DNA from: Blastocystis sp. Blastoise | Lineage: Eukaryota > Protista > Bigyra: Opalinata | Length of the DNA: 64,000 bases | NCBI GenBank assembly: GCA_039096225.1 | Contig: JBBPEB010000017.1 | Coordinates: forward strand, 248,001-312,000 | Direction: 5' to 3' | Part shown: in pieces, positions 50,185 to 57,822 of the stretch | How the letters are laid out: every line of letters starts with the position of its first letter | Numbering within the stretch: the stretch's first letter is position 1 | Notes under the pieces: model-generated | Told to the model about the DNA's origin: nothing | Databases searched by the model: none | What the model saw: the letters and a program-made list of their open reading frames with translations, nothing else | Translations under genes and position numbers: made by a program

Positions 50185-51099
50185 ACTTTTTCTTCATTTA
50201 TTATTTATTCTTTATTCTATTTATTTGATTCATGGTGATTTTTTATCATAATGACTACTACCTTGCTAGCAAACAATGTAATGAGTTTATATTATTGTTC
50301 TCATTTGATATATCATCAAAAGGAGATGACAATCAAAATGAGATAATCGTCAGATTTTTAAATGGAATCATTTTTTTGACTAATATAAGGTTATAGAATG
50401 TTATTCATAAAAGAGTTGTTAAAAATAAGTAACATAAAAATATGATGATTTGTTAAAAATGAGATATTGAACTTAAAATATTTCTTCTTGATCATAGTGT
50501 AGTTTTTTACAACATTAAATACACTAATTAAAATAAAATTATCATAATGAAATGTAAAGAAAATGTGTTTTTGAAAATCAGATATGATATTTATCATACA
50601 TACATTATTGTATCTATATGTATAAATAAAAAATGAAGAAATAATATCAAAAAAACATTATTCATAGTATTCACAACGCAAAATCCATTTTTATTAAAAT
50701 TTATTAGAGTAATTTTATCTGTTTTGTGAATAATGAAAGTTTAAATTGTTAAAAATTCATTTATGTGATAAAGACATTAGATTGGGTATATACACATTTT
50801 AACTAGTTTAAAGAGTGATGTTGGATGGATTTTCACTATCAGCGATTTCCATGAATAAAAATGGCATTCTTTGCCATTTTTTTGCTTGTTTCTTTTTAAG
50901 TTTTTTTCAGCCAGGCGAAAAGAGTAGCCAAAAATTAGGTCATTTTTGTCGGATTTGGTCTTTCTTTTCATTCGTTCAGAATTCTTTTAGAAACGTCATT
51001 ATTTTTATTTATTTTATCGTTGTGTGAATGATAATAAAAATATAATAACAAAAGACAATAAATAATAATATAATAATTATAACAATAGTAAAATAATAG

Positions 51100-51607
51100 T
51101 TATTTGACTTTGATTTAAGTTAATTGTGAACCATTTTGAGGACTATACATGAAAAAAGATAAAATTAATAATAATATAGATAATAGATAAGTATATACCT
51201 TGATAGAACACATCTAGACCAACGAACGAAGAAGAACAAACACTATAAAAACAGAATGTAAAAATATATATATAATATAAGAATATACCTTCAACCACCA
51301 AGTAGTTGTTGGCCAAGGGAGACTTTATCAAGCACCTATTACCTTTAAAAAAATAAAAATAGTTAATTGTAAAAAAAAATAAAAACAATATATACCTTTA
51401 AAACCATGAAGACATGGACCAAGAAGACCTGACACAACAGTTGAACCTATAGAAGATAATAAATAGTAATAACAAAAAGAATGTAAAAAAAATATACCTT
51501 TAATAACCCCAGATTTCTAGTCACCTAAACCCCACAGCTCATTGTTTAACTGTAAAAATGAAGAGGAATCAGGACCTATTTGAATCTATTTTGAAGGACC
51601 AGTAAGC
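51100..51607 (-). ncRNA. Five spliced, apparently non-coding exons inside the CACTA element
   Basis: Exons 51498-51607, 51396-51446, 51289-51342, 51199-51242, <51142; all four donors AAG|GTATAT and AG acceptors; first exon has stops in all frames. Confidence 0.5.
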
Positions 51608-52666
51608 CTATATAGCATAAAATAAATAAAAAATATTATATACATTTTATAATATATAATATATAGTTGTAAATTAAATAAAAATAAAAATAAATATGTG
51701 AAAATATTGAATCTTATAAATAAAGAGAAATTCCCCCTTCCAATTTATTTTTTGTATAATAAAAGTCTTTAGAAAATCTTGGTTTCCAGGGGTTAAAACA
51801 TTTTAAAATTTTCCCTTTTTCTCTTTTATAAAGTCTATTTGAATTTAAAAATGATTTATAAATGTATTATGTGTTTATGAACCTTAATTATTTAATTTAA
51901 ACATGTTTAAGACTTATTAAAACGAAAGAATCGTTATTTTTAAAAGTTTTAATTTCAATTAAATATATTTGTCTGTCATTTTTATTCAATAGTATTTTAT
52001 TTATAATAAGAAGGTAATAAAGAAGCAGAAAATATATTTAGTATAATTAATTATAGAAACATGATTCACAATTCATAAACTTTTGTTTTTTATAAGTTTT
52101 ATTCCAACGAATTACAGAGTATTATAAGTGACTGAATAAATTGAGACTTTTTAAAAGGTCATTAAGTTGTTTTAGAAATAATAAAGAATGCAATTTATTA
52201 AAGTATAAAGTAGATTCATATTTTATCTCTTTCTTTCTATTATTCTAAAAGAATTCTATAAATAATTTTATTACTAAATACTACAAAACAAAAAGAATAA
52301 TATATAAGTTAATAAACACAATAAAAGATAGATAAAAAAGATAATATATAGTATATATATAGTAGTATATCATTATAATACATATAATATAAATATATAT
52401 GAAACTTCTTTCTATCCTATATATACATGATTATAAAACTAAGTATAATCTAAATATATATATATATATTGATATAGTAATATATATATATATATATATA
52501 TATATATATATATATATATATATATATATATATATATATATATATATATATATATATATATATATATATACATAGAGACTTATCATTATCTTAATATACA
52601 AAATAATTATCCAAAAGTCTATATAATAATAATAATAATAATAATAATAATAATAATAATGCTATA

Positions 52667-55600: not shown

Positions 55601-56296
55601 GTAAGTCTTAACACCTCCAATATATAATCTATATATAATATGTAAATAATATATATATAATATGTAAATAATATATATATAATATGTAAATAATATATAT
55701 ATAATATAGATAATATATATATATAGATTATAAAAAAAATATAATTAATATACGAGTAGGTTATTGATTGAATTTGTATAGAGTGCGTCATTAGAATAGA
55801 GGAATGAAGATATATATAGAGTAGAGAGGATAGAATAGAGAGAGGAAGGGAGAGAAGTATGAAGTAGAAGATAAATGAAGAGAGAGAGTGAAGATCGAAG
55901 AGAAGACATATAGGTAGATATTCAGGAGGGCAAACATTCCTATATGTATATGTATAAATAATGACATAACAAATATATAAGAATAAAAGAAATATATATA
56001 AACTATATAAGAATGAAATACTAAATTTAAATTATCTCCTTCAATCATCATCTGAAGAAGTTCTTCATCATATATTCTATATATATATTAATAATAATAA
56101 TAATAATAATAATAATAATAATAATAATAATAATAATAATAATAATAATAATAATAATAATAATAATAATAATAATAATAATAATAATAATAATAAATAA
56201 ATAAATAAATAAATATCTATATGGACTTACTATTTTTATTTGGAAAGCACGAAACTATAATCAGGATTCATAAATGGTGACACGAAAACCATCATT
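52667..56296 (-). pseudogene. NIPBL: Truncated, intron-containing NIPBL/SCC2 (cohesin loader) fragment with PHD finger
   Basis: DLLFLLDNPQ*PVCSF (cf. DLL...PEWPA), LYLNKL...AITTIIEYNPQVI...IREKTL...ICDDGVSVQKVSYKLLNEIL (cf. DTGISVRKRVIKILRDI); TAG 55367-55369, TGA 55020-55022, frameshifts, lost donor near 54995; boundaries approximate. Confidence 0.85.
54816..54995. repeat. Long (AT)n microsatellite (one of dozens of intronic (AT)n/(AAT)n tracts)
   Basis: Uninterrupted AT dinucleotide run of about 180 bp. Confidence 0.95.
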
Positions 56297-57822
56297 CTAT
56301 ATAATATATAATTTAATAAGAATAAAATATAAAGATATATATAATAAACAAATAATAAATAAATATTTTAATAGAGGAAAACAAAAAAATGGAAAAAGAG
56401 TTAATGCAACATAAAAATTTATATACTATATTTACATACCTTTAACAGTGTTTTGAGTTGCTGTCTGAAAGAAGCCAGTGAAGTATTCAAGGAACCTTTT
56501 AAGAACTGAGCCAACGAGTACACATCATAGAACCTTTTGGGATAGACACAGAAGACTGGCTGACGGGAAGAGAAAACCCAGAATCGAAAACCTAAAAGAA
56601 TTATGAAAAATATTTTGATATATTCTATAACTAAATACTGAAATAGCATAACACTGCTTAGAATGACCGGCAATCCTTATAATATAGTCTATTTATTCTT
56701 ATAGACAACAAATTAAAAATAAAGATAAATTCATATTTAAAGTCAATTTTTTAGTCAAATACTAAAAATTTTCATAAATATTCATTTTTAATTTTTTTAA
56801 AATTTTTTATTACTCAGTACTATAGTAACAAGTTTTAAACGTTATGTACTGAGCTATTGACACAACACTATTGTATCTGACTACTTTCAAGTTTTAGAAA
56901 ATTACTCATTTTTGTTGACTCTCTGATCTGTTGACTGACTCGTCTAAAAACTATTAATTTTGACTTAAAACATTTGTATATTACATAATTAACTCTAAAA
57001 ATGACTTTTTGAGAGACTTTTATTTGATTCTGAGAAAAAACAATTATTTAAAACTCTTTGACAATTTGTTTTTATGCGGAACTTTAAGTCATGATAGAAT
57101 AAAATGAAAAAAGTCTTTTAAAACTCTTCTGTCGTCTGATATATAACAAAATAAAAATAGACTCAGTTTTGAACAAGAAAAATATTCCCGTAAATATTTT
57201 AATAATTCAAAACTCTGGTCTGACTGCCCATGGAACAAATAGGCTCGGCTCTTTTTTCACTGTAAAAAATTTATAAATTTTTGACTTTTTGGCTGAATTT
57301 TGGTTTTGACCTGTAGAGGTCACTTCATTCAATTTTACACATACTTGTGACTCTGAGAGGGTCTTCACTTTAAACAGACCAACAAAAGGTTTTAAAATAT
57401 TGACCCCATTATTTGTCGGAATTGCGACTTAAAACAAAAGAAAAACGTTTTGGATATTATGTGACCTTGTATAAATAAAAAATAATGCCAATACTTTGAT
57501 AAAATATGCTTAACATGAATTTTAGAGTCTAATAAAAAATCAACTGAAAAAAAGTGTCAAAATTTTGTCAAAAATCACGATTTTTGCCTAAGTCGCTGAA
57601 GAAAAGCTCTTTTCATTGGTGGAAAAAATTTTTAACTAAAATCAGCCAATCAAATGCATTTAAATGCTCAATTATCGCTGATAGTGTTTGGTGATCAATT
57701 GATTCGAGTAGTTATTATAATAAAGTGTTTAAAACGAAACAACAAGAGTTATATAATATGCAAAAAGTATAAGAAACCAGAAATGATATGACTTTAGAAT
57801 AATAATGAAATTGCAATGACAT

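Follow-up and report, generated by a model that had tools for sequence, protein, structure and literature searches.

A 64,000-nucleotide stretch of Blastocystis sp. Blastoise DNA (contig JBBPEB010000017.1, positions 248,001 to 312,000; referred to throughout as the window) carries a Pack-CACTA element, with CACTA ends, no transposase and a captured host-gene fragment. The organism is the tortoise isolate Rus-B (PMC10690189). The captured fragment recurs in a second, transposase-bearing CACTA family of the same genome, and its copies differ from one another by the presence or absence of whole introns. The explanation that best covers these observations, to which we assign a probability of about 0.8, is a non-autonomous CACTA/EnSpm element (family B) that captured its cargo and in which introns have been lost by an RNA- or cDNA-templated route. 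The Pack-CACTA type itself is already known; new here are the mosaic of intron loss between copies and the transfer of cargo into transposase-bearing copies.

The element is delimited by a perfect 13-bp terminal inverted repeat (TIR), CACTATCAGCGAT, at 50834-50846, with its reverse complement at 57674-57686. The triplet TTT stands directly outside both repeats and forms a target-site duplication (TSD) of 3 bp. The parts of the element, in window coordinates, are:

50831-50833, no strand: TSD TTT (left), flanking the TIR
50834-50846, plus strand: 13-bp TIR, 3' end of the element in transcribed orientation; an equivalent degenerate terminus lies inside the family A copies
50847-51100, minus strand: 3' subterminal arm; its identity with the arm nested in family A is ~87%, and 58% over the final 66 bp
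51100-51608, minus strand: five short exon-like units, B1-B5, with GT-AG introns, 61-78% identical to the family A copies
52573-56296, minus strand: captured multi-exon host-gene fragment of 3.7 kb, pseudogenised, both ends at intron boundaries
56440-56591, minus strand: exon-like unit A, with a donor that could be spliced to the cargo's first acceptor
56592-57673, minus strand: 5' subterminal arm, with weak similarity to the 5' end of a TnpD-bearing element (L005)
57674-57686, minus strand: 13-bp TIR, inverted repeat at the 5' end of the element
57687-57689, no strand: TSD TTT (right), flanking the TIR

All splice signals noted in the element belong to the minus strand, along which the order is 5' TIR, 1.1-kb arm, unit A, cargo (~56296-52573), B1-B5, 3' arm and TIR. 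The cargo has the orientation of the element's own exon-like units and, because both its ends fall within introns, a chimeric A-cargo-B transcript would be possible. Units B1-B5 have no clear open frame and no Pfam match and probably represent 3' exons of the element itself, decayed or non-coding; unit A has neither a homologue nor a Pfam match. A tblastn search of the window with the transposase TnpD gave no match, and no TnpD coding remnant is present in the window copy; the element is non-autonomous. No clear subterminal repeat array was found in it. A CCAAT-box-like motif lies at 57645-57656, ~30 bp inside the right TIR.

CACTA...TAGTG termini with short TIRs are what the CACTA/EnSpm superfamily requires. 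Among the CACT[AG] pairs of the window, only 50834/57686 has a TIR longer than 9 bp, and no further match to the 13-bp TIR (up to two mismatches) occurs anywhere in the window. Judged by length only, this is modest evidence, as a TIR of at least 13 bp with a 3-bp TSD arose in 3-7 of 300 Markov windows (3 and 7; p ~0.01-0.02). When composition is weighted (the TIR has six G/C bases), the TIR alone was reached in 1-4 of 350 windows, whereas in neither of two models did any of the 350 windows give TIR and TSD together (0/700 simulated windows). These figures bear on the alternative that the TIR pair is a chance pairing or a dead relic, the interval being either a truncated family A piece or a segmental duplication, never mobile as a unit. 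Three observations weigh on that side: no second copy with family B's own TIR pair was found among the retrieved loci or in a metagenome scan with merged TIRs (0 matches), the length-only p is ~0.01-0.02, and TTT is weak evidence in sequence that is 75% AT. Such an origin nevertheless appears very improbable given the composition-weighted null. The left boundary is independently supported: at three other loci the homologous sequence stops, with a degenerate CAC terminus, just where the window has its left TIR. The right arm has no counterpart in family A and looks like the 5' end of a CACTA element; its alignment with the 5' end of L005 scores 76 against 40.5 +/- 6.9 for shuffled sequence (0/200 shuffles). 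Intact host genes flank both sides:

50112-50184, plus strand: tRNA-Ala(AGC), outside the element and 650 bp from it
57823-59254, minus strand: glycine cleavage T protein gene (GCVT), outside the element, its stop (57825-57823) ~135 bp away

The best match of the GCVT product is to Blastocystis hominis (67%). No Blastoise protein is present among the GCVT homologues although the window is from Blastoise, and the gene may be unannotated or mis-joined. An earlier account made from the letters of the window (the sequence-only reading) had described the 13-bp repeats with their TTT flanks, the CACTA/EnSpm type, the non-autonomous state, the protist host and the distances to both neighbours. Each of these holds, the type being supported by TIR, TSD and null tests and by the related TnpD families.

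The genome was accessible through its annotated proteins only, and copy counts of family B are limited accordingly. One cargo exon used as query returned Blastoise proteins whose annotation shows transposase-cargo fusions and pieces of the cargo. The cargo loci retrieved are members of a second CACTA family (A), found on three contigs other than the window's; the TnpD loci and the window are of the same genome. Copy L003 is complete (12,109 bp, TSD AAT), L004 together with L006 makes up another complete copy (TSD ATA) split by a 12.4-kb insert, and L002 is 5'-truncated. Two complete copies with differing TSDs (AAT, ATA) demonstrate mobility directly for family A. That the window element is itself a mobile, gene-capturing one, as the sequence-only reading held, is supported as an interpretation, the direct evidence of movement belonging to its relative. 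The same reading had implied a transposase elsewhere in the genome and proposed a profile search for it; every family A copy carries an annotated TnpD above the Transposase_21 (PF02992) cut-off, and Transposase_21 TnpD is also encoded by a third family (C; L005), at 52% identity. The TnpD proteins have candidate D, D, E residues and C(2)C and H(3-4)H motifs, the features of the CMC group used for comparison being those of PMC12730594. L005 was considered as autonomous partner of family B and rejected, as its TIR differs. The family B TIR agrees with those of families A and C over CACTA or CACTAT only, which counts against the explanation preferred here.

Homology with the 3' part of family A covers the window from 55128 to 50834. 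Where the window has its TIR, family A shows a degenerate terminus (4/13 mismatches), located 176 bp in from the family's own end. Family A thus contains, as a nested segment, the 3' half of a B-type element together with the cargo, and this segment is moved by A's outer TIRs. From 55128 to 52668 the cargo is 93-99% identical per exon to that of the three family A copies. Identity in the arms is 75-87% as against ~95% in the cargo, and a block of sites in L003 is common with the window copy in a mosaic pattern; together these point to an exchange of tracts between copies by conversion.

Alignment of the four copies (window, L002, L003 and L006) reveals nine positions that differ by the presence or absence of a GT-AG intron. 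The window copy lacks six introns outright, near 54767, 54554, 53577, 53101, 52804 and 51550, with others between them kept, and is probably also without a seventh at 53014; two are missing from L006, two from L002 and one or two from L003. The junctions in the window copy are:

54766-54767, minus strand: missing 34-nt intron, exact, present in L002, L003 and L006
54553-54554, minus strand: missing 38-44-nt intron, exact, no microhomology
53576-53577, minus strand: missing 50-nt intron, exact, no microhomology
53100-53101, minus strand: missing 53-73-nt intron, exact, no microhomology; L006 is also without it
52803-52804, minus strand: missing 28-74-nt intron, exact, no microhomology
51549-51550, minus strand: missing 35-nt intron in unit B1, exact

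With one exception (L002 at 52803, where 8 extra bases are removed) every deletion is exact at the splice sites. The window's reading frames continue across its cargo junctions, and the annotated Blastoise proteins P0122, P0127 and P0123 splice out segments that are deleted in other copies. Over 4,162 aligned bases L002 and L006 show 3 substitutions, yet four adjacent introns differ between them. This arrangement may reflect two tracts, or a single tract of four introns with later recombination or mis-phasing; under either scenario the genomic DNA must contain an intron-less variant. On this evidence we consider it likely that RNA- or cDNA-templated conversion removes the introns.

Deletion at the DNA level, in which breaks at (TA)n cruciforms are repaired by end joining at splice-site microhomology and RNA plays no part as template, would fit the TA-richness of most lost introns, the 2-5 nt of microhomology at four of the nine junctions and the imprecise loss, by 8 nt, in L002. 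The other five junctions have no microhomology and are yet exact at GT and AG in at least one copy, neighbouring introns are lost in runs, one of the lost introns is free of TA repeats and pure-TA introns are kept; we regard this route as improbable. An artefact of assembly, through mis-phasing of near-identical repeats or errors in their consensus, has to be weighed because such repeats can be mis-phased in a nanopore assembly, which counts against templated conversion. The genome was assembled from R9 nanopore reads with Flye and racon, and the losses in L002 and L006, which are 99.9% identical, are reciprocal (5' pair versus 3' pair), as a phase switch would give. Mis-phasing, however, swaps variants between loci and cannot make exact GT-AG excisions, the window copy is ~5% diverged and is missing six introns, and 5.5-7.5 kb on the TnpD side show no intron gaps between copies. 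RNA-based polishing as the source of the gaps was rejected, as polishing used nanopore and Illumina DNA reads only (PMC12129017). Templated conversion from spliced RNA or cDNA is preferred for this reason, and an artefact seems most improbable.

Gain of the variable introns in some copies, in place of loss from others, deserves as little credence. In its favour, no parent gene that would polarise the changes was found among the annotated proteins, and introns are longer in the tortoise-isolate genome than in human isolates (PMC12129017). The introns are, however, mutually unrelated in sequence, and L002 and L003, which are not sister copies, share the 53101 intron, which the sister L006 lacks; loss is the more parsimonious since non-sister copies have the same intron. 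As to the template of the preferred conversion, the L002 junction at 53014 joins the same flanks as the L006 intron, both copies being without an 18-nt piece that is kept in the window and L003. These shared flanks, and the loss within unit B1, favour the elements' own transcripts over parent mRNA as the putative template. Synonymous sites show an excess of differences between the window copy and L006 (40 observed, 25.6 expected), which suggests a functional gene as the place where some of the divergence arose; the parent may accordingly also have served at times as a conversion donor.

The cargo and its principal lesions are marked by the following features:

55067-55159, minus strand: PHD finger (PF00628), E 8.9e-6, above the Pfam cut-off, with a frameshift near 55068 and a TGA at 55022-55020
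54182-54247, minus strand: Cohesin_HEAT-like repeat (PF12765), E 0.064, sub-threshold
55367-55369, minus strand: premature in-frame TAG, with a second TAG at 55180-55178
54157-54163, minus strand: premature TGA and 1-bp deletion relative to the family A copies

Gene models of the cargo were searched exon by exon, the pieces on either side of a stop being searched separately. The cargo is probably derived from Scc2/NIPBL, the cohesin loader. Matches to Cohesin_HEAT in the window and family A copies have E-values of 0.064-0.15, under the 21-bit cut-off, and lie downstream of the PHD finger. Several ordered stretches of the cargo appear to resemble NIPBL motifs (PDB and fold searches gave no confirmation), and the fragment seems to end near the point where the Nipped-B_C domain would start; the 32-residue last cargo piece gave no match to that domain (PF12830). 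Ten (TA)n tracts (introns) and five copies of the palindromic motif CCGYGG, which is enriched across the window, occur in the cargo and none of either in the element arms, so that the cargo looks like host DNA.

Several searches weigh against the Scc2/NIPBL name. In the PDB, phmmer with cargo exons and annotated cargo proteins retrieved PHD fingers only and no Scc2/NIPBL; Scc2 entries in protein libraries had no significant match to the cargo; and Foldseek gave no match at E <=0.001, the two single-sequence AlphaFold2 models having a predicted local distance difference test score (pLDDT) of ~40 and thus being uninformative. The search for the parent gene among annotated proteins returned element-borne copies only, a metagenome scan with the cargo protein returned none, and a search for a full-length parent (637-2026 residues) retrieved only an element-borne fusion. 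Pentatricopeptide repeat (PPR) matches in the PDB search were sums of weak matches and judged spurious, and a Neisseria invasin-domain protein and a Cannabis protein that matched a cargo exon were dismissed as repeat-driven noise. Descent from another gene with PHD and HEAT/ARM repeats would agree with the lack of significant Scc2 matches, and with the description of the PHD in SCC2 as land-plant specific (PMC7304647). Cohesin_HEAT is, however, the sole Pfam match of its exon in the window and L003, it also matches P0127, and it falls downstream of the PHD; a gene other than Scc2/NIPBL is thus an unlikely source, if a less remote prospect than the alternatives for the introns. If the cargo is Scc2, the PHD finger at 55067-55159 stands upstream of Cohesin_HEAT, the feature called land-plant specific (PMC7304647).

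The cargo is a pseudogene, as the sequence-only reading had held of this interval, and most likely has no protein function. It contains in-frame stops at 55369, 55180, 55022, 54163 and 52766, 1-bp indels near 55068, 54717, 54373 and 54157, a lost splice donor at 54997 and a frameshift near 52815 that is common to all copies, in total about ten disabling lesions. The TAG at 55180-55178 was considered as the end of a 30-nt intron, which was rejected because it sits in a nearly open frame of 470 nt; no homologue covers the spot. A processed pseudogene (retrocopy) was likewise rejected, since at least five cargo introns are kept among the lost ones and the ends are CACTA TIRs. The sequence-only reading had named the cargo as part of the cohesin loader gene: a decayed host-gene fragment with a PHD finger stands, whereas the Scc2/NIPBL name is probable. 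Supported in its outline, that reading had overlooked the cargo in transposase-encoding elements and the precise intron loss between copies.

We propose that, in the course of repair, an ancestral B element acquired DNA from the middle of a host gene, probably Scc2/NIPBL, with most of the gene's introns included. The 3' part of B with the cargo would then have become part of family A, either through nested insertion combined with deletion or through a template switch at a (TA)n intron, and would now be mobilised by family A's outer TIRs. Gene conversion would exchange tracts between copies, of which L003 would be a mosaic. Spliced chimeric element transcripts, as RNA or cDNA, would serve as templates of conversion or repair, with the exact removal of several neighbouring introns in a row. 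A TnpD supplied in trans may have inserted the window copy at its TTT site. It tells against this scheme that transcription of the element and a source of reverse transcriptase are putative. A closer coupling of intron loss to the transposon cycle, with breaks or gaps repaired from spliced RNA or cDNA and introns vanishing about as fast as point mutations, is offered tentatively and is less likely than not to be the case.

Plant Pack-CACTA elements (Tpn1 of morning glory; Tgm-Express1 of soybean, PMC1947982; Pack-CACTA1 of Arabidopsis, PMC6379663) are alike in their CACTA TIRs, 3-bp TSDs, lack of transposase, internal host exons and introns and possible chimeric splicing. The hybrid-element model for Arabidopsis, in which outer TIRs are used (PMC6379663), fits the B terminus nested in family A. 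Unlike the plant elements, the present one has a stramenopile host and its cargo is also found in TnpD-encoding copies; the fragments of Tgm-Express1 are described as retained exons and introns (PMC1947982), whereas here introns are lost precisely between copies. Family A and L005 resemble autonomous En/Spm elements of the CMC/CMCT clade (PMC12730594, PMC4158355) in encoding Transposase_21 with C(2)C and H(3-4)H motifs and in having CAC..GTG ends and 3-bp TSDs. Differences from that clade are that no TnpA/ORF2 Pfam match and no clear subterminal repeat arrays were found, and that the window copy has no coding remnant of TnpD. For introns lost from CACTA transposases, mediation by reverse transcriptase has been put forward as the likely route (PMC4158355). 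That study concerned consensus proteins of families over deep time, whereas here loss separates copies up to 99.9% identical and is seen in the captured cargo and the 3' units and not in the transposase gene. The Pack-TIRs of animals (PMC8277862), like Pack-MULEs, also capture DNA by gap filling or template switching followed by transposition. The animal elements are mostly of other superfamilies, and the terms 'intron loss' and 'cDNA' do not occur in that paper (PMC8277862) as far as a keyword check covers it. In the literature searched, coverage of which is incomplete, there was no report of CACTA or Pack elements in Blastocystis, nor of intron loss between near-identical CACTA copies or in captured cargo.

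The transposase-bearing loci have further features. Candidate pieces for a second open reading frame (ORF; TnpA) gave no Pfam match; a divergently oriented gene upstream of TnpD in families A and C (L003 8694-8942 and 9601-9825; L005 8952-9785), the family A pieces of which have no convincing Pfam match, may be this ORF. At L002 10001-16018 and L003 10001-15865 the transposase-cargo fusions KAK8793336.1 and KAK8797505.1 are annotated as hypothetical proteins, as are cargo-plus-B-exon genes, and all are probably transposon products or mis-joins. The 12.4-kb insert (L004 13195 to L006 ~7545) has no long ORF and consists of direct and inverted ~3.2-kb units, a foldback-like arrangement. A 54-bp minisatellite upstream of the cargo (L006 8740-9650, 17 copies in L006) explains length differences of 160-760 bp between family A copies. 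Other DNA transposons cluster near these loci (L003 1-7300 and 19500-25865; L005 19566-22182; L002 2793-5594) and include hAT-like, Tc1/mariner DDE_3, PIF/Harbinger DDE_Tnp_4 and piggyBac-like elements, the ends of the last recurring in L002 and L005.

The palindromic motif, approximately ATWMCCGYGGKWAT, is strongly enriched throughout the window (CCGCGG 12 observed, 0.3 expected; 21 cores), at positions that include 4762, 15832, 33858, 39247, 41834, 44203, 52858 and 54488. Several copies lie within coding exons, and it is absent from transposon DNA (L005 and family A's own part). Similar cores are present in a GC-richer B. hominis locus (L001). It may be a DNA-binding or modification site; a literature search for the motif found nothing.

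With this element, Pack-CACTA gene capture, known from plants, is found in a stramenopile gut protist as well, with a cargo that has passed between non-autonomous and transposase-bearing families. Should the cargo be Scc2, a PHD-containing Scc2 would exist outside land plants. Intron losses between near-identical copies make the debated reverse-transcript-mediated route of intron loss testable with public reads, which bears on why human-associated Blastocystis have compact genes and tortoise isolates do not. If intron loss is indeed coupled to the transposon cycle, a DNA transposon would turn captured genes stepwise into processed copies, some of them fused to an intact transposase, and Blastocystis would offer a natural, copy-resolved system for testing RNA-templated intron loss.

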